From Phaeosaccion multiseriatum (lineage: Eukaryota > Protista > Ochrophyta, other classes), in contig OZ218962.1 of NCBI GenBank assembly GCA_965112735.1, positions 2,170,001 to 2,234,000 on the forward strand: 64,000 nucleotides of DNA, written 5' to 3'. Below, in pieces: positions 110 through 63,961 of the stretch. The stretch's first letter is position 1. Each line of letters opens with the position of its first letter. The notes under the pieces are model-generated. The model ran no database searches, was not told the origin of the DNA, and saw only the letters and a program-made list of their open reading frames with translations. Both the position numbers and the translations under genes were made by a program.

Positions 110-9124
<9,015 letters not shown>

Positions 9125-20007: not shown

Positions 20008-22886
20008 ATGAGCTTTTTCAAGCAGGCGTGGGCGGGCTACAATGCCAAGCTCAACTCTAACCCCTTGGTGGTCAAGGCGCTCACCTCCTTCACAGGCTTC
20101 ACGCTAGGCGATGTGCTCGCGCAGAAGTTCATCGACCCTGATAAGGAGTACGACCTCGCGCGAACGCTGAGACTGGGTGAGTAGCAGTGAAGCGGTGCTG
20201 GACACAGAGGATACAGCTGCCTGGGCAAAAGAGAAAGAATCTTTTCTCTCTCTATTGGGGTAATGTGTGGACAAAATCTGAGCGAAGGCGCGACTGACAG
20301 CAGCCGCTGCATAAAAAAAGTGGTGATTTGAATGCAGACGAGATAAGCTTTGAGGGGGGATTGCTCGAGGAGAAACACGTCCGGGGTGTTTTTGGGTGCC
20401 CTACGCTGACTTTCTTCGCCCTCTGATGGCCTGGCCGACTAAGGAAGCAAGGGGGGGAAGGGCTTGGTGGCAGTCCTTTGCTCGCTGCTCTTGCTCGCTG
20501 CGTCAGTGCAAGCCGGAGCGTGCTTGCTTTGGACATGGGAGACTGACGCACCCGCACACAGACCTGCGGCTTGTTTTGACAACGTGTACTCGCGTTTTAT
20601 ACCACTCATCCTTCCCGTCGCTCTCTCTATGCCCTCTGTGTCCTGCTTGCTTCCATGTCCCTCTCTCTGACTCCTGTCTTTCTTCGCTCTCTCTCTGCTA
20701 TCCCTCTCCCCCGCCCTCTCTTCCACCCTCCTTCTCTCTCCCCCCATCCCTCCCTCCCTCCCTCCCTCCCTCCATCCATCCCTCTCTCCCTCCTTCCACC
20801 CCGGTGTACAGCTTCCTTTGGTCTTCTTTTCCACGGTCCCTCTGGACACTACTTCTACGGGTGGCTGGACAAGCAAATCGTGGGTACCGGAGTGAAGCAG
20901 GTCGTGTCAAAGGTAGCCATCGACCAAGTTGTGTGGAACCCCATCTTCGGTAAGTTGCCATGAGCTGCTTCCCCTCCTTATAGAAAAGAAGGAAGAGTTT
21001 GAAGGACGAGTGGCAGAACCAAGTACTGTTGGTATCAACGCTCATTTCGTGCATATACGAAAGACGCGAGTGATGAAGCTCTACGAAGCGGTACCCTCCT
21101 AGAAGGGAAGAAACTCTCCTCCTGGTGCTGCTGCTCGTGTCTGCGAGGGACGAACGGACGCATGGCCCTTGTGGCTCTTGGGTGCTTGGGGGGTGCCGTT
21201 TGAGCCGGGACCTTGTATTCCGCCATGCAAGGCATGCTCCAAACGAACGAACGCAATGCTGAAGCCAATGAACACGTTATTGACATGCCATGCCCCCCCC
21301 CCCCTTACCTCCTCTTTCCCGTCTCCCTGCCCTTCTCTGCCCCCCCCCCCCCTCTCCTCCCTCTCAGGATGCGCGTTCTTCACCTACACCGGGCTAGCAG
21401 AAGGTCCGTGTCAGTCTTGTCTATATGCGCAGAATAGGCACGAGGAGGACCTCTCTCAGGACCAGACAAGAAGAGGATTGTGCAGACAAGAAAAGGATTG
21501 TACTCACCATATGGTACCTCCTGGCTCTTCCCTCACTCCCTCTACCCCTTCCTCCCTCCCTCCCTCCCTCCCTCTCTCCCTCCTTCCCTCCCTCCCTCCT
21601 TCCCCCCTTCTCTCCCGCTCCAGGCAAGTCGATGTCGCAGATCGGCGACAAGATCAAGGCCGACCTTCAGACTGCCGTCATGGGCTCCTGGGCTGTGTGG
21701 GTACCCGCACATACCATCAACTTCCGGTGCGTACCATTGAACCAAACCATGCACATAGATCATGGGAGATATCTCTTATTTCTCACACACACACATACGC
21801 ACACACGCACATATGCACACATGGACACACGCACACACACACACTGATGTACCCATATTCCCTTTCTCCTTACATGGCGCGCCCATCCTTCCCCATCCCG
21901 ATTTGATTGTGTCCCCATCTTGATTGTGTATCTCCTGACGCTTTTGTCCACCCTCCTCCTCCTCCTCTCCTCCTCCTCCTCCTCCTCCTCCTCCTCCTCC
22001 TCCTCCTCCTCCTCCTCCTCCTCCTCCTCCTCCTCCTCCTCCTCCTCCTCCTCCTCCTCCTCCTCCTCCTCCTCCTCCTCCTCCTCCTCCTCCTCCTTTT
22101 CCTCCTTTTCCTCCTTTTCCTCCCCGCTTCCCACAGTTTCATCCCCTCCAACCAGCGTCTGCTGTACATTAACACCATCCAAGTTGGTTACAACATCTTC
22201 CTGAGCTGTAAGTGATCCACGCCACTCTGCTGCGTGTGTGGGTGCCCCCCCCCCTCTCATTATAGATGTTTTATAGGCCTATCTATGTGTATACTCGATG
22301 TGCACAGCCCGGACACTTGCGACACGAGGCTTCAGCAGAATGGCTGCCTACCTCAGTTGCCTCCAGTGTGTGTCCTGCTTCCTTCCTTCTGTCGTTCGGG
22401 GGGGAGGGAAAGGTCTGGTGGGCGTCGAGTCGAATCGTCTTATTCCTTCACCATTTTCTCACAAACTCTCTTCCCTTCCCAATTGCTTCCCGTTCGTCCC
22501 TCCCTGCAACCCTCCTCCTCCACCTCCTCCTCCTCCTCCTCCTCCTCCTCCTCCTCCTCCTCCTTCTCCTCCTCCTCCTCCTCCTCCTCCTCCTCCTCCT
22601 CCTCGTCATCCTCCTTCTCCTCCTCCTCCTCCTCCTCCTCCTCCTCTTCCTCCTCCTCCTCCTCCTCCTCCTCCTCCTCCTCCTCCTCCTCCTCCTCTTC
22701 CTCCTCCTCCTCCTCCTCCACCACCACCACCTCCTCCTCCTCCTCCTCCTCCTCCTCCTCTTGCCCCCGACACGACACACCACAGTCCTCGCAAACAAGA
22801 GCGCAGACGCGGCGCCCGTTGAGGCCTTGGAGGATGCGGCAGACAAGGTGGCGGACAAGGTGGAGGAGGCGAAGAAGGATCTCTAA
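20008..22886 (+). CDS. Mpv17/PMP22 family membrane protein, 6 exons, ~205 aa
   Basis: Exons 20008-20176, 20812-20949, 21368-21403, 21624-21726, 22137-22207, 22786-22886 (618 nt). Motifs NPLVVKALTS, GDVLAQ, YDLARTLR, GPSGHYFYGWLD, KVAIDQVVWNP, WAVWVPAHTINFRFIP. Confidence 0.92.
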
Positions 22887-24342
22887 ACACTTTTGGTCAC
22901 CGAGGAGGAGGTGGTGAAGGAGCCCTAAACGCTTGGGTCAGAGAAAGAGAGGTCTATAGGTGATGACGATGATGATGATAAGGAGGAGGAGGAGGAGGAG
23001 GAGGAGGAGGAGGAGGAGGACGATGATGACGTCATGTTGGTGATGTTGATGTTATTGTTGTGATGATGATGATGATGATGATGATTGAAGGTTGGAGCTC
23101 TCCACACTCGGGGTCAGAGAACGAGCTCTAATCATGATGATGGCAGATGGAAGAAGGAGCTCTAGGCAAGCAAGGGAAGGGGGGGCGGTGATGGGATGGA
23201 CGAGAGAACGGGTGGGTGCGATATCGTCTTTTAGAGGAAGGGGGTGGGGGGGGGGGCGGTTTCGTCTTGGAGAGGAATTTTGGACACACCACACACATGG
23301 TGATGGTGAGGTTGTTGAAAGGCGCGTGGGCTGACGTCGGCTTGAATTGCTGACATACTGTCAGTCCGGAGCCTTGGGGGAGGGGGGGGTGGAGGGGGTC
23401 TCGTTCCGAAGCGGAGAAGGAGGGGAAGGGAGATGGTGTGCAGGGGGGAGGGGAGGGAGCAGTTACAAATATACAATATACATGACAGAAACGGAAACCA
23501 ACAATCCCATCTTTCATTTATTAGCACCACAAGTTCACCCTCACCCGCTGCCAGGCGAGGCGGTGAAATCTTCTGGGACAAGGGGGGGGGGTGCTGATCA
23601 TTAATTTTTTTTTATATCAAAAGTTAAACCAAAGTATCAATCCATCCACCACCCCCCGCACGCCATCGATCACAGACAGGAAACAGAGGAGGGCAGTTAC
23701 GCCACCCACCCTTCCCCGTCGGACCGTCGGACCAAACACATACACATACATAACAGCACGGAAACCACACCGGCTTCCAACGGATGGAGATACCATCTCG
23801 AGTCGAAGCTTCAAAATTGCTGCCCCCCCGGAGTCAGTCCCCCTCCCGCAAGGATCAATCGATCAATCATAGGAGATTACCCCGCCCTTCGCGCCGCCGG
23901 AGAGCGCACAGTCAGTGGAGAGAGTCGTGTGGTCGTTGTTGGGTCGCTCCCGACCCTCCCAGATACCCCAACAAAAAGGTAAGGCAATCAACATCCTCTC
24001 GGGGCCGACTTCCTCCATATATACTCCTTGCTTCTTCTTCCCTCGCTCCTCCTGCCATTGCTCCTGTGCTAGGCTGGCTGCCGCTGCCGCCCCCCCTTAT
24101 CTCCTCGCTCCCACGCAGCTGCTACTCATAGAGCCTTCCGCTTCTTCATGTTACAGTTACAGAAGTGTACTGACGAAGCCCTCCAGCAACGTGCGTTCCT
24201 TTTGTTTCTTTCCTTTAGCTTCGTTGGTTCGCTTCGTACCCTACAGTCTCTCACCACGACGTGGGGTGCAAAACCGCAGCGCCTCAACGATTTCCGCACC
24301 ATCTCCCCGTCGCCCACCATTGAGCCACTGCCACACCATCGC

Positions 24343-26699
24343 CTAGAACTGGGCCAGCATGATGCCCTCGGCGCCGACGCCGGGGGAGAAGGAGAAGGCG
24401 AGGCCCATGCCGTAGCCCTTCTTACCCTGCGCGAGGGCGTCGTTGTGCCTCTTGAATACACGCTCCAGCACAAACATGACGGAGGGGGAGAGCATGTTTC
24501 CGTACTCGTGCAGCACGGCCCACGAGTCCGCCGTCTGGTCCTCGGACAGGCCCAGCCCGTTCTGCGCCTCCTCGATGATGCGCCTGCCCCCCGGGTGCAC
24601 GGCCCAAAAGTCCACATCCTTCCTTTGCTTGTTGTTGCGCTGGAGGAAGCTGTCCACGTAACCGCCCATGTTCTTGGCAATGTAGTTGGGCAGGAACTTG
24701 GACAGCGTGCAGCTGATCCCGTTGGGGTTGATGGCCAGCGTGATGCCGTCCTCGGTGCCCTCCATGAGATGGCAGTGGTCGTCCACAATGCCCAGCGTAC
24801 CCTTGGGGACGGAGCTGTGCGTCTCTCCGCTCATGACTGCCGCGGCACAACCGTCGGCGAAGATGGCGTGCAGGATGGCGTCGTTGACGCTGTCCTCGAA
24901 GGTGGTGTGTACGCTGCTCAGCTCCACGCACAGCATGAGGGCGTACTTGCCCTTGTTTGTCTTGACGTAGTCGTTGGCGATGCGGAAGCCGTTCATGGCC
25001 GCTGCACAGCCCATGAAGCCGATGAGCGATCGGTCCACGCTTCGCGGCAGGCCCAGCGTGGCAATCATCTCGCAGTCGAGGCCAGGCCCCAGGAAGCCCG
25101 TGCTGCTCACCACCACCAGCTTGCTAATGTCCGACACTTCCAATCCCGCGTTGGCAATGGCTCGCCGGGCCACGTCACACACGAGAGGCACGGCCTTCTC
25201 CTTGAACTTGTCGAGGCGGGTGTTGACGGGGATGTTAAAGTCTCCCTCGGGTTTGTCTTTGCTGAAGAAGAACATGGGGTCGCCCTCCTCCGCTCTGTCG
25301 GGCGTAAAGTCGGGGACGGCAAAGTAGCGGCTGCCGATGCGGCTGTTGCCGTAGATGCGCTCCAGCACGGGCTTGACTCCCTCGCAGCCGGGCGCCTTTT
25401 GCGCGATCTTGAGGGCCTCGCCCTGTGTGCAGCGATACTGGGGGTTGCCCACCGCCATGCCCTTGATCACCGGCACCACCTTCTCCTCCTCCTTGCCCGA
25501 CATGGCAAAGGCTGCTTGGCATCGGAGGAGGGAGGGAGGGGGGGAAGAGGACGGGGAGGAGGAGGAGGAGGAGGAGGGGCGAGGGGGAGGAGGGGGAGGA
25601 GGGGGAGGAGGGGGAGGAGAGGGAGGAGGGAGAGGAGGAGGAGCGAGGGGGAGGAGGGGGAGGAGGGGGAGGGGGAGGAGAAGGGAGAAGGACGAAGGAG
25701 AGGCGGGCATGGAGTGGTAGCCAAAATAACGGAGGGAAGAGCAGCGGTGCCGGTGGGTTAGGCACGGTTGTGAAGGTCGGGCAGAGCAAGCCAGGACCCA
25801 TGTCGTACACGGATTCGTCGAGACCAAGGGGTGGGGTGAGCTTTGTGTGGTCAGTGGTAATGGTAGTGGAAGCGATGGCGTACGGAGGAGCCAACCGTAA
25901 CGGCCTCGTGCTTCCATTCGCCATTGGGTGTGGCTCGGCGTGGTACTGTACCACCAGCAAGTCCGACAACGCAACCAATCATGCTGCTCCGACTACTACC
26001 AGCTGCCCAGCATATTCTCTTTCTTCTTTCTTCCCCTTCACCCGTCCCCTTTTTTCCTTTCTATCTATCTCTTCTTGTACTGATGTCCTTTGATTCTCTC
26101 TCTCTTTTCTCGACGGGCTGTTCTAGCCCTCCCGTAGTCGCCAGTTAAGCAGACAAAGCATGCTTAGTCTGCGCATGCCTCTTAACTATGATCAGCAGTG
26201 TGCTTTCATCCACGCGTCATGATTCGGGCACCCTAGGCGCCAGACCATGCCAACTCCCCGCGCTCCCCGCCGCGTGCTTCCCACACGCAAAACACAGCCT
26301 CTGCCACAAGTCCCGTTGTGGGCTCTCTGTGCTGCTTGCCTCATTCTTGCCTCATTGCTTTTAGCCCGATCGTCCGTTATATGGCGAAGTAAGCTCCCTC
26401 CGTCCCTCCGTCTTACTTTGTGCAACTGGAACGCTCTGCTCACTTCCGACACCCACACCATTGGATACTTTCCTTTCCCCACAACCCGCCCTACACGCCA
26501 TCGCCTCTAGCCCTGCACACGGCGGTATGCTAGCCCTTTATTACCACTCAGTCAGTTCCTCTTCTTCCTCGTTATATCGCTGGTTGGCCCGCCTTCCCTC
26601 TCACTCACCGTACAGCAGCGCGATCAGGACACACAACCCGGCTACCTGCACCGGAAGCTCCCTCACGAGGGCCATAGCCTGTTCCTGCATGGTCTCCAT
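24343..26699 (-). CDS. Type III polyketide synthase copy A (brown-algal PKS1/phloroglucinol-synthase-like), 2 exons, ~419 aa
   Basis: Exon 1 26699-26609 (METMQEQAMALVRELPVQVAGLCVLIALLY, donor G|GTGAGT); exon 2 25511-24343 after pyrimidine tract and CAG acceptor, phase compatible. Catalytic triad GFMGC, AVHPGG, YGNM; C-terminal FSFSPGVGAEG. Confidence 0.93.
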
Positions 26700-26980
26700 C
26701 TCGCTCAATGTGGCCGTCTCAGCTTCAGCTGGGAGCGCGAAGAGCCAGCGTTAGGAAAGGTAGGGAGAGTAATAACCATACAAGGGCGAATTGAAAAGAC
26801 GGAATGTAACGGTGATTGTAACGGGTGATTGTAACGGCATGTAACCGCGGTTTTCCGATTTTCCATTTTCCATTTTTTCTTCTTGGGGCAGCTCCCTCCA
26901 CTATTGCAGCAGCCACGCCACAAGGACTATTGCAAGGCAGCCCATCAACCTTGTGTTGTCTCTGCGTTGGTCAGGTCACC
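26700..26980. promoter_or_regulatory. Putative bidirectional promoter between the two PKS start codons, with four TGTAAC(G/C)G repeats
   Basis: 281 bp between divergent ATGs. TGTAACGG at 26805, 26817, 26830; TGTAACCG at 26840 overlapping the palindrome AACCGCGGTT; then three TTTTCC repeats. Confidence 0.6.
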
Positions 26981-28567
26981 ATGATCGCAGTAGCAGGTGT
27001 TATGGACGCCTCCGTCGCGCTTCTCCATGAGGTGCCCGTGCAAGTAGCCCTACTTTGCCTGCTCCTGTCCGTGCTCTATGGTGAGTCACATGTGATTTGT
27101 GCGAGAAGCCGAGAGAGAGACGGGCAAGGCCTGACTGAATGTGTGTGTCATGTGAATGTCGCTAGCTCCGCCAGACAGGGTCGGCCTTCTGGCTGAAGAG
27201 GGAGGAAAAAGTAAAAAAAAAGGGGAGATCCTCATTCATGATCCATAATTTGCTCCACCTCAACAAGAAACCCCTCGCCCCTCCTCCCCCTCGCTCCTCC
27301 TTCCCCTCCTCGTCCTCGTCCTCCTCCCCCTCGTCCCTCCTCCTCCTCCTCCTCCCCGTCCTCTTCCCCCCCTCCCTCCCTCCTCCGATGCCAAGCAGCC
27401 TTTGCCATGTCGGGCAAGAAGGAGGAGAAGGTGGTGCCGGTGATCAAGGGCATGGCGGTGGGCAACCCCCAGTATCGCTGCACACAGGGCGAGGCCCTCA
27501 AGATCGCGCAAAAGGCGCCCGGCTGCGAGGGAGTCAAGCCCGTGCTGGAGCGCATCTACGGCAACAGCCGCATCGGCAGCGGCTACTTTGCCGTCCCCGA
27601 CTTTACGCCCGACAGAGCGGAGGAGGGCGACCCCATGTTCTTTTTCAGCAAAGACAAACCCGAGGGAGACTTTAACATCCCCGTCAACACCCGCCTCGAC
27701 AAGTTCAAGGAGAAGGCCGTGCCTCTCGTGTGTGACGTGGCCCGGCGAGCCATTGCCAACGCGGGATTGGAAGTGTCGGACATTAGCAAGCTGGTGGTGG
27801 TGAGCAGCACGGGCTTCCTGGGGCCTGGCCTCGACTGCGAGATGATTGCCACGCTGGGCCTGCCGCGAAGCGTGGACCGATCGCTCATCGGCTTCATGGG
27901 CTGTGCAGCGGCCATGAACGGCTTCCGCATCGCCAACGACTACGTCAAGACAAACAAGGGCAAGTACGCCCTCATGCTGTGCGTGGAGCTGAGCAGCGTA
28001 CACACCACCTTCGAGGACAGCGTCAACGACGCCATCCTGCACGCCATCTTCGCCGACGGTTGTGCCGCGGCAGTCATGAGCGGAGAGACGCACAGCTCCG
28101 TCCCCAAGGGTACGCTGGGCATTGTGGACGACCACTGCCATCTCATGGAGGGCACCGAGGACGGCATCACGCTGGCCATCAACCCCAACGGGATCAGCTG
28201 CACGCTGTCCAAGTTCCTGCCCAACTACATTGCCAAGAACATGGGCGGTTACGTGGACAGCTTCCTCCAGCGCAACAACAAGCAAAGGAAGGATGTGGAC
28301 TTTTGGGCCGTGCACCCGGGGGGCAGGCGCATCATCGAGGAGGCGCAGAACGGGCTGGGCCTGTCCGAGGACCAGACGGCGGACTCGTGGGCCGTGCTGC
28401 ACGAGTACGGAAACATGCTCTCCCCCTCCGTCATGTTTGTGCTGGAGCGTGTATTCAAGAGGCACAACGACGCCCTCGCGCAGGGTAAGAAGGGCTACGG
28501 CATGGGCCTCGCCTTCTCCTTCTCCCCCGGCGTCGGCGCCGAGGGCATCATGCTGGCCCAGTTCTAG
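26981..28567 (+). CDS. Type III polyketide synthase copy B, 2 exons, ~422 aa
   Basis: Exon 1 26981-27080 (MIAVAGVMDASVALLHEVPVQVALLCLLLSVLY, donor G|GTGAGT; alternative ATG at 27002); exon 2 27399-28567. Triad Cys 27902, His 28313, Asn 28412. Confidence 0.93.
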
Positions 28568-29313
28568 GCGATGGTGTGGCAGTGGCTCAATGGTGGGCGA
28601 GTGACACTGTTGTCGTAGCGTACATGTTGCGTATATTATTGCCCCTGCTGTGCGCCGACGATGGGGGCAACGCGCGGTATGTTATCGTCCAATCGCACGC
28701 ATTTGCGTTCGGTGGAGATGGAACGGGGATGGTTGCTTGGCAGAAAGGGAACCAACACCGAGGGTGATGATGGGAAGAAGTGGACGGAGAAGGAGGAGGT
28801 GGAAAGGGAGGAGGAGGAGGAGGAGGAGGAGGAGGAGGAGTATCGGTGCATGAAGTGCCATCACTTTTCGGGGAAGGCACCATGTGGCGCGACTTACAGC
28901 AACAAAGAATGGTGCCATGTGTTTCGTAGGGGGGCGGCGGCTAAGGGGGTAGGGGTGTGTGGCTCGCGGTAGAGGGGAAGATCCTCCACCGATGGAGCCC
29001 AGAGGAGAGGCAGGAGGGGAAGGGGTAAAAACTCTGACAGGAGGGGAAGGAGTTAAGGCCCTTTACTATAACCATAGGCGGCGTTGATCGACAGTTATAC
29101 GATGACGCACAGCACACGTAAAACACGTCTACTTATTTACGAGTATCCACTCTCTTCTAAGCAGTAGCGACCGACTGTGCGTGCTGTATAACCAACTGCT
29201 CCCGCCACGCTGCTGTATCACCAACTGTGCTGCTGTGCCGCTGGTGCTGGTGCCGGCTCGCGTCTTCCGCGTCTATAACCTCACACTACGAGCCTCCATG
29301 CCCCTCCATCCTG

Positions 29314-61815: not shown

Positions 61816-62861
61816 AAGAGACAGAAAGGCAGAGGTAAGTAAGAGGTTATGGTACGAGAAGAGAGAGAGAGCGACAGAGTGAGAGAGGTGCAAGAGGGAA
61901 GCGTGGAGAAGGGACACAGCGCGCGATGGGAGCGGTGGAGGAGGCAGGGGAAAAGGCGTCGGACGTAGGCGCTGGGTGTGTAGTAAGGGCGAGATGATGA
62001 GCAGGGAAGGGAGACAAGGAAAAGAGGGAGGAGCGCTCGCCCACACGGGCCAGAGAAGAGGACCACGCGGATGTTGAGGGTGGGGCGAAAATCCTTTTCC
62101 TGTGGCAGCTCTCTCTCTCTCTCCTTCATGGGCGAGCTCGTACTCACTCACTCACTCACTCACTCACTCACTCACTCACTCACTCACTCACTCACTCACT
62201 CACTCACTCACTCACTTGACAAAGAAGGGACACACAGTCCCTAGAGTGGCATGCGAGTTAGCAATCTCTATCCCCAGCTTCTCCGCAAGCTCTTCCCCTG
62301 GAGTCTGCCCTCCCCCCTTGGGTGCCTGACCTCCTCCCTCGGCTGTCTGACTTCCCCCCTCGGGCCTCGCTGACGCACACCCACCGCCACGACTGCGACT
62401 ACTTGCAGCAGCACTGCATGGGTCAGTGGGCTCCTCCTCCTCCTCCTTCTCCTCCTCCTCCTCCTCCTCCTCCTTCTGCTGTATCATCAACTGCTCCTGC
62501 TGCCCTCTGTCGACAGAGCACCCCGCCAGGGCAGGGGGGTACCACTTCCGTGTGCGAATGTCCATCAAGTTCATCCCCGACGCATCGCTGCAGTCAATGG
62601 GAGCATAGTCCCCCAGAAACAGGGAGGGGAGGAAGGAGGACACCAGCGCCACCCGCTCCGTAGCCGAGTATACATCCGGCTCACAGTTGGCGATTTTCCG
62701 TATCTGCAGCCCGCTGAAACGGCAATAGGCCTTTGATCCGGTGGCGTCTGCGAGGGCTTGGGCTCCTCCGACGGAAGCCTGCAAGTGGTCGCATTCTTCT
62801 GTGGTGCTGGAGTCCGCCCAAATTGGGCTCGCTCGGCGAGAGAAGCAGCCTGAAAAACAAA

Positions 62862-62900
<39 letters not shown>

Positions 62901-63096
62901 AAAGTATAATGGGCTTGGGCGAAGATGGTGATGGGAGGGAGGGGGAGAGGGGGAGGAAGGGGGGTAAGAGTGAGGGTGAGGGTGAGGGTGATGGTGGGGG
63001 ATAGCGTGAGAGCGAAGGTGAGGGTGTGTGTGAGGGATGAGGATGAGGATGAGGGTGAGGGTGAGGGTGAGGATGAGGATGAGGGTGAGGGTGAAG

Positions 63097-63129
<33 letters not shown>

Positions 63130-63961
63130 AGGATGAGGATGAGGGTGAGGGTGAAGACTCGAGAGCGACGACGCACCCTCAAGGGCGTCTTTGAGCGTAG
63201 TGCGTTGGTCGGCTTGAACCTGCCCTTGGCCCAAGCAATGCTGCTGCTGCTGCTGCTGCCCTTGGCCTGCACAGTGCTGAAGCCTCTCTTGCAGTCGCTG
63301 GCGGGCTCCTCTCTTGGAATAAGGTGGTTACACCGCAAGGTGTCAGCGGCAGAGGAGGAGGGTCAGTTCGTTGATTGCATTGATTGGCCGTGAACTGAAG
63401 CAATAGAGAGGGCCATCATCTCAAGGTACGAAGTGGAGAGTTTGGGGCTTGACTTTGAACCTAGACCCCTCGGGAAAGGTCCCTCCTGCACTCACTCACT
63501 CGCCCACTCTCTCTCTCACTCTCGCTAACTCTCTCACTTTTGCTCTCTCTCGCACTCACTATCGCGCTCACTCACTCAATCACTGAACCACACACACACT
63601 CACTCACCTTCTCTCACTCATTCACTCACCCACTCACCTTCCAATACACCGTGCCATGCTGTTGGCCACTGAAGGAGACGGCCTTGACCTTCGGCATAAG
63701 TGGATGTCGGACCAAGCGAACGAGGCCCATATCGAGCGCGTCGAGCCACATCGTGACTGGGGAAGTTACAATTGAGAGGTCTTTGCCCGATACATGCATG
63801 CCCGCCTTCGTGTTATAGTGCGGAAGGCACTCGTCGAAGCTGACGGACTCCACTGCTTTCACCTCATAATCGCCTGCTGCAACCCCAAAGGACAGCAGAA
63901 TGATTGTGCAGCTTTGCGTGCTTAGGTCGACTCCCATGTAGACGTCATCTTCTTCCCCCAT
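59552..63961 (-). CDS. XYLB: Xylulokinase (FGGY carbohydrate kinase, eukaryotic type), multi-exon
   Basis: [118 protein letters not shown]; stop at 59552-59554. Confidence 0.93.

Follow-up and report, generated by a model that had tools for sequence, protein, structure and literature searches.

A head-to-head pair of predicted PKS1-class polyketide synthase genes with near-identical catalytic exons and diverged first exons in Phaeosaccion multiseriatum

Structure of the gene pair

The window analysed here, the whole 64,000-nucleotide stretch of Phaeosaccion multiseriatum contig OZ218962.1 between positions 2,170,001 and 2,234,000, contains a palindromic pair of genes encoding type III polyketide synthase (PKS), with near-identical catalytic exons, and the initial annotation of this pair is confirmed. 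The locus appears to consist of two divergently transcribed, two-exon genes of the PKS1 class, each with a short anchor exon, a phase-1 intron and a single long catalytic exon. The features of the two genes, referred to as left and right by their position in the window, are as follows:

24343 to 25511, minus strand: exon 2 of the left PKS1 gene, 1169 nt, with the whole catalytic domain; stop codon at 24343-24345; translation starting at the ATG at 25503 gives a type III PKS of 386 aa
25512 to 26608, minus strand: predicted intron 1 of the left gene, 1097 nt; donor GTGAGT, acceptor CAG
26609 to 26699, minus strand: predicted coding part of left exon 1, beginning with the ATG at 26699; 30 codons and one further nt, phase 1; N-terminal membrane anchor
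26981 to 27080, plus strand: predicted coding part of right exon 1, beginning with the ATG at 26981; 33 codons and one further nt, phase 1; N-terminal membrane anchor
27081 to 27398, plus strand: predicted intron 1 of the right gene, 318 nt, with a GTGAGT donor and the acceptor AG at 27397-27398, preceded 3 nt upstream by another AG in the same frame (NAGNAG)
27399 to 28567, plus strand: exon 2 of the right PKS1 gene, 1169 nt, with the whole catalytic domain; stop codon at 28565-28567

The exon 2 length of 1169 nt in both copies and the intron lengths of 1097 and 318 nt had been given correctly before. The predicted first exons, which were missed by the open reading frame scan and are needed to complete the annotation of both PKS genes, are very probably real, as judged from comparison with related sequences. 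Left and right exon 1 are each other's sole match in the 67-Mb genome, and both encoded peptides align with the N-termini of PKS1 orthologues and share the same anchor motif. Furthermore, each exon is bounded by a phase-1 GTGAGT donor that aligns with the position of intron 1 in the PKS1 genes of Hapterophycus, Choristocarpus, Phaeothamnion and Tribonema. As this phase-1 intron position is conserved in the orthologues, exon 1 is expected to be joined to exon 2 in both genes. The same two-exon layout is also found on a related metagenomic contig. Signal peptides or anchors are stated for many stramenopile PKS III proteins (10.1101/2024.02.19.579948). All similarity searches were run on the individual exons. 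When the exon 1 peptide was compared with solved structures no match was found, as expected for an anchor of 33 residues. The sequence of the long left intron is unique in the genome, and a transposon insertion was thus ruled out.

Classification of the encoded enzymes

The left and right copies are 99 % identical, and the chalcone and stilbene synthase domains PF00195 (Chal_sti_synt_N) and PF02797 (Chal_sti_synt_C) were identified in both, with scores above the Pfam gathering cut-offs. In an alignment of 61 sequences that contains both copies, the columns C166, H303 and N336 do not vary, and we take these to be the Cys-His-Asn catalytic triad of the type III PKS family. The nearest solved structure to the right copy is that of Ectocarpus PKS1 (4B0N), with an end-to-end alignment (E = 1.5e-197). 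On sequence grounds, both genes can be assigned to the PKS1 class, and not to PKS2 or PKS3. They share with Ectocarpus PKS1 the class, the 414-aa-type architecture, the N-terminal signal anchor and the conserved Cys-His-Asn columns. They differ from the Ectocarpus and other brown-algal PKS1 enzymes in sequence, with an identity of only 73-76 %, and in that the catalytic region is carried in a single exon, compared to seven to ten exons in four annotated orthologues. The best protein matches overall are 73-79 % identical, and no relatives above 79 % protein identity were found in the searches. The best named match, P0011 (79 % identity), is the sequence that the Phaeoexplorer preprint lists under the name PhawePKS1A in its Table S9 (10.1101/2024.02.19.579948). 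A third PKS of the genome, encoded on contig 14, is only 46 % identical. The products of PKS1 enzymes differ between species (10.1101/2024.02.19.579948); the product of the two enzymes would be phloroglucinol or a pyrone. A look-up for independent contigs that encode exactly the same protein as the right exon 2 open reading frame returned no record.

The nearest contig, L004, shares 73 % nucleotide identity over exon 2 and contains a single PKS copy. Its upstream neighbour gene is unrelated, with no PKS similarity and an FHA-like motif recognised by eye, while its neighbouring DENN-domain gene has no match in the window. A haloperoxidase-like gene occurs approximately 37 kb from the PKS pair; the identifiable intervening open reading frames are unrelated to the pathway, and a tight PKS-haloperoxidase gene cluster was rejected.

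Membrane anchors and the shared promoter region

The start codons of the two genes lie only 281 nt apart, and the sequence between them contains a cluster of short motifs:

26700 to 26980, no strand: region between the start codons, 281 nt, the putative shared divergent promoter with the 5' UTRs
26805 to 26847, plus strand: cluster of four TGTAACSG motifs within the putative divergent promoter region

The TGTAACSG motif has nine matches in the window against 1.16 expected, a number reached in 0/100 shuffles, and four of the nine fall within these 43 nt. The sharing of one promoter region with such a motif cluster favours co-regulation of the two genes over separate programmes. Both anchors are of the same kind, as they share their motif, a hydrophobic core of 20 residues, an acidic N-terminal flank and a Lys-rich C-terminal flank, and on the charge rule the same membrane topology is predicted for both. 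Only the short tails before the anchor, of 14 and 17 residues, respectively, are unrelated in sequence. In the initial annotation the pair had been described as essentially a single enzyme that has two N-terminal addresses or patterns of expression. Two addresses are not borne out by anchors of the same kind that differ only in short tails, and two expression patterns are at odds with start codons that are separated by 281 nt and flank a single divergent promoter region with a four-fold motif cluster. The description as essentially one enzyme also falls short. Two of the differences between the copies alter the protein, at residue 5 (Glu/Lys) and residue 59 (Arg/Gly) when numbering begins with the ATG at the beginning of exon 2, and the second of these is located as follows:

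27581, plus strand: Arg/Gly difference at residue 59, with Gly in the right copy and Arg in the left copy (25329)

Residue 59 is an arginine in 60/61 aligned PKS1 sequences, the sole exception being the glycine of the right copy.

The inverted repeat and its edges

An independent repeat search of the window identified an inverted repeat of 1307 nt with 99 % identity (24310-25616 and 27294-28600). In an ungapped mirror comparison, where each position p is paired with 52910-p, the arms extend over 1265 nt and are reverse complements of one another with three mismatches. The arms and the tracts at their inner edges are:

24310 to 25574, no strand: near-perfect inverted repeat, left arm of 1265 nt (repeat family I1; mirror comparison)
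25575 to 25715, no strand: (GGA)n microsatellite, rich in purines, within intron 1 of the left gene, at the inner edge of the putatively homogenised block (repeat family D3; mirror comparison)
27256 to 27335, no strand: (TCC)n counterpart of this microsatellite within intron 1 of the right gene, at the inner edge of the putatively homogenised block (repeat search and mirror comparison)
27336 to 28600, no strand: near-perfect inverted repeat, right arm of 1265 nt (repeat search and mirror comparison)

Within each arm lie the final 63 nt of the intron, the intron-free 1169-nt exon and 33 nt past the stop codon, and the 67-Mb assembly contains two copies of the arm, both at this locus. At the outer edge the identity ends abruptly, 33 nt beyond both stop codons, while at the inner edge it fades within the intronic (GGA)n/(TCC)n tract. 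The only mismatches between the arms are those at 25267/27643, 25329/27581 and 25491/27419, the same three sites as recorded in the initial annotation, and one is silent while two are protein-changing. None of these differences is found in the outer 957 nt of the arm and all three fall within the inner 308 nt (chance p = 0.014, for a span picked post hoc). They had been placed within the 240 nt nearest the spacer; the clustering holds, but the figure does not, as they extend up to 245 nt from the start of exon 2. Beyond the inner 308 nt the divergence steps up further toward the centre, with approximately 75 nt of about 86 % identity with gaps, after which the similarity is random.

Divergence of the two copies

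The near-identical tract, including its silent and non-coding sites, adjoins homologous sequence that is far more diverged. The alignable core of exon 1 comprises 21 codons, with 13 identical residues and 36/63 identical nucleotides. The two first exons had been considered homologous but diverged, which is upheld, with 13/23 identical residues, a count that is corrected here to 13 residues over 21 codons. Silent change is extensive, with nine of the thirteen codons for the same amino acid differing between the copies. By the NG86 method, dN for exon 1 is 0.33 and dS is undefined through saturation, on only 21 alignable codons, while exon 2 has a dS of 0.0038 and a dN of 0.0022. The silent-site contrast between the exons is highly significant (Fisher's test, p = 1e-14). 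Among the non-coding sequences, the 3' ends of the introns are alignable (z = 13), whereas the 5' 900 nt of the left intron cannot be aligned to the right intron (z = 1.6, shuffle level), in agreement with the earlier description of introns alignable at the 3' end only. The promoter halves likewise have no leftover mirror homology (z = 0.1) and are no closer than shuffled sequence. Together, the sequence comparisons show a duplication that would be much older than the exon 2 block.

Origin of the near-identical block

The silent sites of exon 1 are saturated against a dS of 0.004 for exon 2, and the introns and promoter are unalignable; for these reasons an old inverted duplication, followed by non-allelic gene conversion of the exon 2 block, is the best reading of the locus and is probably correct. 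The proposal of an old inverted duplication with a homogenised catalytic exon, made in the initial annotation, is thus sustained. The pair would have been born by an old head-to-head inverted duplication of the whole gene, after which the centre, with the promoter, both first exons and the greater part of intron 1, would have diverged to saturation. The 1.27-kb block, made up of the final 63 nt of the intron, exon 2 and a 3' flank of 33 nt, would then have been copied from one arm to the other by homology-driven conversion, most likely in more than one event. There may also have been a single recent conversion followed by three mutations that cluster by chance, with a p of about 0.014 for the post hoc span. 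The inner limit of the block may be set by the variable (GGA)n microsatellite of the intron, which would interrupt homology and so act as a barrier, while its outer limit probably corresponds to the point where the original duplication ended.

Near-perfect arms could also be produced by the assembly or its polishing, either through the fold-back of one copy or where diverged arms are made alike by multi-mapped reads, and the arms, their three differences and the splice junctions are read from the assembly and from comparative inference. Such an artefact is very unlikely. The centre consists of 1761 nt of non-palindromic, unique sequence, with two different intact first exons and introns of unequal length, and this asymmetry is evidence against a fold-back chimera, which would be symmetric to a point. 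Identity ends at an intron microsatellite on one side and at a sharp breakpoint, 33 nt beyond the stop, on the other, three differences between the arms have been kept, and the contig is 3.3 Mb long in an assembly of 22 contigs, in which a structure of 4.3 kb would be expected to fit within single long reads. Palindrome centres are unstable, and the centre of a young inverted duplication might therefore have diverged fast by error-prone repair, with no need for conversion. The large length differences in the centre, such as introns of 1097 and 318 nt, are compatible with this history, but it is quite unlikely, as revision of the centre takes the form of deletions and insertions and would not yield a homologous exon that has about 43 % point differences while keeping its frame, start codon, donor, phase and anchor motif. 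In addition, dN in exon 1 is well below the saturated silent divergence, and both first exons thus appear to have long been under constraint.

Conversion with an mRNA-derived (cDNA) template, a process put forward for some cases of concerted evolution limited to exons, was considered, as the block is mostly one exon and the catalytic region is without all the introns carried by its orthologues. It is extremely improbable and was rejected on the edges of the block, which includes 63 nt of intron, a part that mature mRNA lacks, and excludes exon 1, which the mRNA contains, the opposite of what a cDNA template predicts. The arrangement could also be a functional design, in which selection keeps one catalytic module while the diverged first exons provide two membranes or expression programmes. 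Intact and apparently constrained first exons, tails that differ before the anchor, and differing introns that could carry different enhancers are in keeping with such selection. Set against these are the identical motif, core and flank charges of the anchors, with the same predicted topology, and the closeness of the start codons around one motif cluster. Furthermore, PKS1 anchors vary freely between species, and a microsatellite barrier would explain why conversion stops before exon 1 without any selection; a functional design is therefore considered unlikely. A crossover between the arms could flip the 1.76-kb centre, with its promoter, first exons and introns, without breaking either gene, so that a population could hold two isomers of the locus. 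That such flipping goes together with conversion of one catalytic module, with the diverged but constrained anchor exons and introns supplying two membrane contexts or expression programmes, is likewise improbable. Under an old duplication with later gene conversion, the outcome would be two near-identical enzymes tethered to the membrane, with a divergent promoter common to both genes probably driving their expression, and the effect would be mainly one of dosage.

Comparison with known systems

The palindromic gene pairs Hsp70Aa/Hsp70Ab and Amy-p/Amy-d of Drosophila are homogenised by ectopic gene conversion (PMC3924832), while arm-to-arm gene conversion maintains the identity of the arms in the palindromes of mammalian sex chromosomes (PMC8600007, PMC8327919, PMC8981503). 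As in the Drosophila pairs, the PKS genes are linked mirror-image paralogues with near-identical coding sequence and diverged surroundings. Unlike these pairs, the block described here stops inside the gene, in intron 1, such that one coding exon escapes; the genes are type III PKS genes of a stramenopile alga, and we infer conversion from one genome. The sex-chromosome palindromes likewise have inverted arms of more than 99 % identity around a unique spacer, but their arms range from 10 kb to megabases and contain whole genes, whereas the arms here are 1.27 kb long and the spacer is made up of the genes' own promoters, first exons and introns. In the human fetal globin pair HBG1/HBG2, conversion is reportedly bounded by a simple-sequence tract in intron 2, a finding attributed to Slightom et al. 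in 1980. The resemblance lies in a conversion tract that would end at an intronic microsatellite and in a gene that is part identical and part diverged, although the globin duplicates are in tandem and their homogenised part is 5', while the PKS pair is inverted. Expansions in PKS1 copy number have been reported, with up to five copies in Sargassum fusiforme (10.1101/2024.02.19.579948), and no paper on a head-to-head, conversion-homogenised PKS1 pair was found in the literature searched.

As a case of gene conversion the locus is clean but ordinary and involves no new mechanism. It offers a tidy example in which conversion would keep a single exon alike in the two copies of a gene and end at a microsatellite within the intron, in a relative of the brown algae, a lineage where such processes are little documented. 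The PKS1 class supplies the precursors of phlorotannins, the tannins of brown algae, in that group. The difference between the copies at an otherwise invariant arginine will matter to anyone expressing either of them.

An inverted pair of PKS1 genes

A repeat search of the window identified a single dominant inverted repeat (24310-25616 versus 27294-28600; 1307 nt, 99 %). Base-by-base mirror comparison aligned the arms over 1265 nt without gaps (24310-25574 and 27336-28600), with only three mismatches (25267/27643, 25329/27581 and 25491/27419), exactly those listed in the initial annotation. Identity of 100 % gives way to chance similarity over a few bases at 24309/28601, the outer edge, which lies 33 nt past both stop codons; at the inner edge, identity decays within a (GGA)n/(TCC)n microsatellite. 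The 67-Mb assembly of 22 contigs contains only two copies of the arm. Long trinucleotide microsatellites of TCC/GGA type lie beside the PKS pair and extend into it (22000-22830, 25520-25715, 27256-27390 and 28760-28855), and tracts of this type give fifty-five partial matches to the inner 50 nt of the arm genome-wide.

Each arm contains an uninterrupted 386-codon ORF, starting at ATG 25503 (- strand) in the left copy and 27407 (+ strand) in the right, and both ORFs incorporate two chalcone/stilbene synthase domains. An end-to-end alignment links the right ORF to Ectocarpus PKS1 as crystallised (4B0N; E = 1.5e-197), and PKS1-class proteins of Phaeothamnion, Tribonema, brown algae and an uncultured relative (73-79 % identical) are the best database matches. 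In a 61-sequence alignment, the columns C166, H303 and N336, the Cys-His-Asn triad of the type III PKS family, are invariant in both copies. A third type III PKS of this genome, on contig 14 (2030387-2031214), shares 46 % identity with the pair and probably belongs to the PKS2 class.

Predicted first exons and splicing

A short first exon was predicted upstream of each catalytic exon (exon 2), as follows.

Predicted exon boundaries of the two PKS1 genes
ATG 26981, end 27080, + strand: right exon 1, 33 codons plus 1 base, then a GTGAGT donor
27397-27398, + strand: right acceptor AG, restoring the frame three codons ahead of the ATG of the long ORF
ATG 26699, end 26609, - strand: left exon 1, 30 codons plus 1 base, then GTGAGT
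25511, - strand: start of left exon 2, at the mirrored acceptor

In a six-frame search of the whole genome, neither exon-1 peptide had any match beyond itself and the other one (E = 0.03-0.04). Both are alignable with the N-terminal anchors of orthologous PKS1 proteins and carry their motif, in which an acidic residue is followed by P/T-V-Q-V/I-A, Cys and a run rich in Leu; the Schizocladia PKS1 (Phaeoexplorer tables) has this motif too. Intron 1 is in phase 1 in four of the four annotated orthologues (Hapterophycus, Choristocarpus, Phaeothamnion and Tribonema), in all of which it coincides with the end of the hydrophobic segment and occupies an aligned position identical to that in this pair. 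A metagenomic contig encoding a related single-copy PKS (L004) has a similar layout, in which a small intron separates a short anchor exon from a catalytic exon free of introns. The two-exon models of both genes are thus well supported by reciprocal genome matches, a common motif, conserved intron position and phase, and the L004 layout, with splicing itself as a prediction.

The tandem acceptor CAAGCAG at 27394-27398 retains the reading frame with either AG, as does its mirrored counterpart in the left copy; a single Ala codon where exons 1 and 2 meet might thus be present in some transcripts and absent from others. The catalytic region forms a single exon in both copies, at 24343-25511 and 27399-28567, as well as in L004, and seven to ten exons in the four annotated orthologues; the predicted retention of the first intron alone is a 3'-biased pattern of intron loss.

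Segmental divergence and probable gene conversion

Divergence between the left and right copies by segment
Exon 2, 388 codons: dN 0.0022, dS 0.0038
Exon 1, 21 alignable codons: 13 residues identical, 9/13 of those codons differing; 36/63 nt identical; dN 0.33; NG86 dS undefined (saturated)
Silent-site contrast, exon 1 versus exon 2: Fisher p = 1e-14
Intron 5' parts: z = 1.6 versus shuffles
Last ~130 nt of introns: z = 13 versus shuffles
Two halves of the 281-nt inter-ATG region: z = 0.1 versus shuffles

The initial annotation had described homologous but diverged first exons beside near-identical second exons, and introns unalignable save at the 3' end. The values per segment bear out both descriptions, with silent sites saturated in exon 1 and a dS of 0.0038 in exon 2, and similarity between the introns concentrated in their last ~130 nt. 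From the outside inwards there are no differences in 957 nt, three in 308 nt, and ~86 % identity with gaps over ~75 nt of microsatellite, beyond which the sequences are unrelated. All three differences fall in the inner quarter (p = 0.014, for a span chosen after seeing the data).

This contrast between exon 1 and the exon 2 block supports the earlier proposal of an old inverted duplication with arm-to-arm conversion. An old inverted duplicate pair would have arisen first, with homology-driven copying, a non-allelic gene conversion, subsequently homogenising one block between the arms; the microsatellite is the likely inner barrier to conversion, and the sharp outer edge is most simply read as the original duplication breakpoint. 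Purifying selection cannot account for identity at silent and intronic sites, and a young whole-gene duplication is contradicted by homologous, intact first exons saturated at silent sites. Conversion templated by cDNA is excluded because the block includes intron sequence and omits exon 1. Together, the stepwise gradient and the clustered position of the three differences point tentatively to several events that ended at different inner points.

The initial annotation further considered the pair to be essentially one enzyme, but the copies are not strictly identical. Residue 59 (counted from the ATG at the start of exon 2) is Gly in the right copy (27581); Arg stands there in the left copy (25329) and altogether in 60 of the 61 PKS1 sequences aligned. 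Gly59 may be a recent change which conversion has neither erased nor spread, a polymorphism or a base error, and may weaken the right copy.

The Drosophila Hsp70Aa/Ab and Amy-p/Amy-d genes are classic mirror-image pairs kept alike by ectopic conversion (PMC3924832), as are sex-chromosome palindromes (PMC8600007, PMC8327919). In brown algae, PKS1 copy number varies and signal anchors are present (Phaeoexplorer preprint, 10.1101/2024.02.19.579948). A literature search for a head-to-head PKS1 pair with conversion confined to the catalytic exon found no paper.

Predicted membrane anchors and the shared upstream region

At the N-terminus of both predicted products, a short acidic tail precedes a hydrophobic core of 20 residues with one common motif, and a Lys-rich stretch follows. 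By the charge-difference rule, both copies, and likewise the orthologues, would be membrane proteins with an outward-facing N-terminus and a cytosolic catalytic domain. Given this like anchor layout, the suggestion of two N-terminal addresses finds no support. Separate expression patterns, the alternative proposed, are not likely, with the start codons of the two copies only 281 nt apart and a cluster of TGTAACSG motifs between them. Four such motifs, each in + strand orientation and 10-13 nt from the next, occur within 43 nt (26805-26847), and nine are found in the whole window against 1.16 expected. The cluster looks like one shared regulatory module, and is a candidate as such; the motif resembles a Myb-type YAACKG site.

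On the same contig, ORF fragments ~2-4 kb past the end of the window (~2000-4000 of locus L009) were recognised by eye as candidate vanadium haloperoxidase exons, ~37 kb from the right PKS1 copy. Since the identifiable intervening genes are unrelated, for example an FGGY kinase (62212-63231), this represents a loose linkage rather than a tight cluster.
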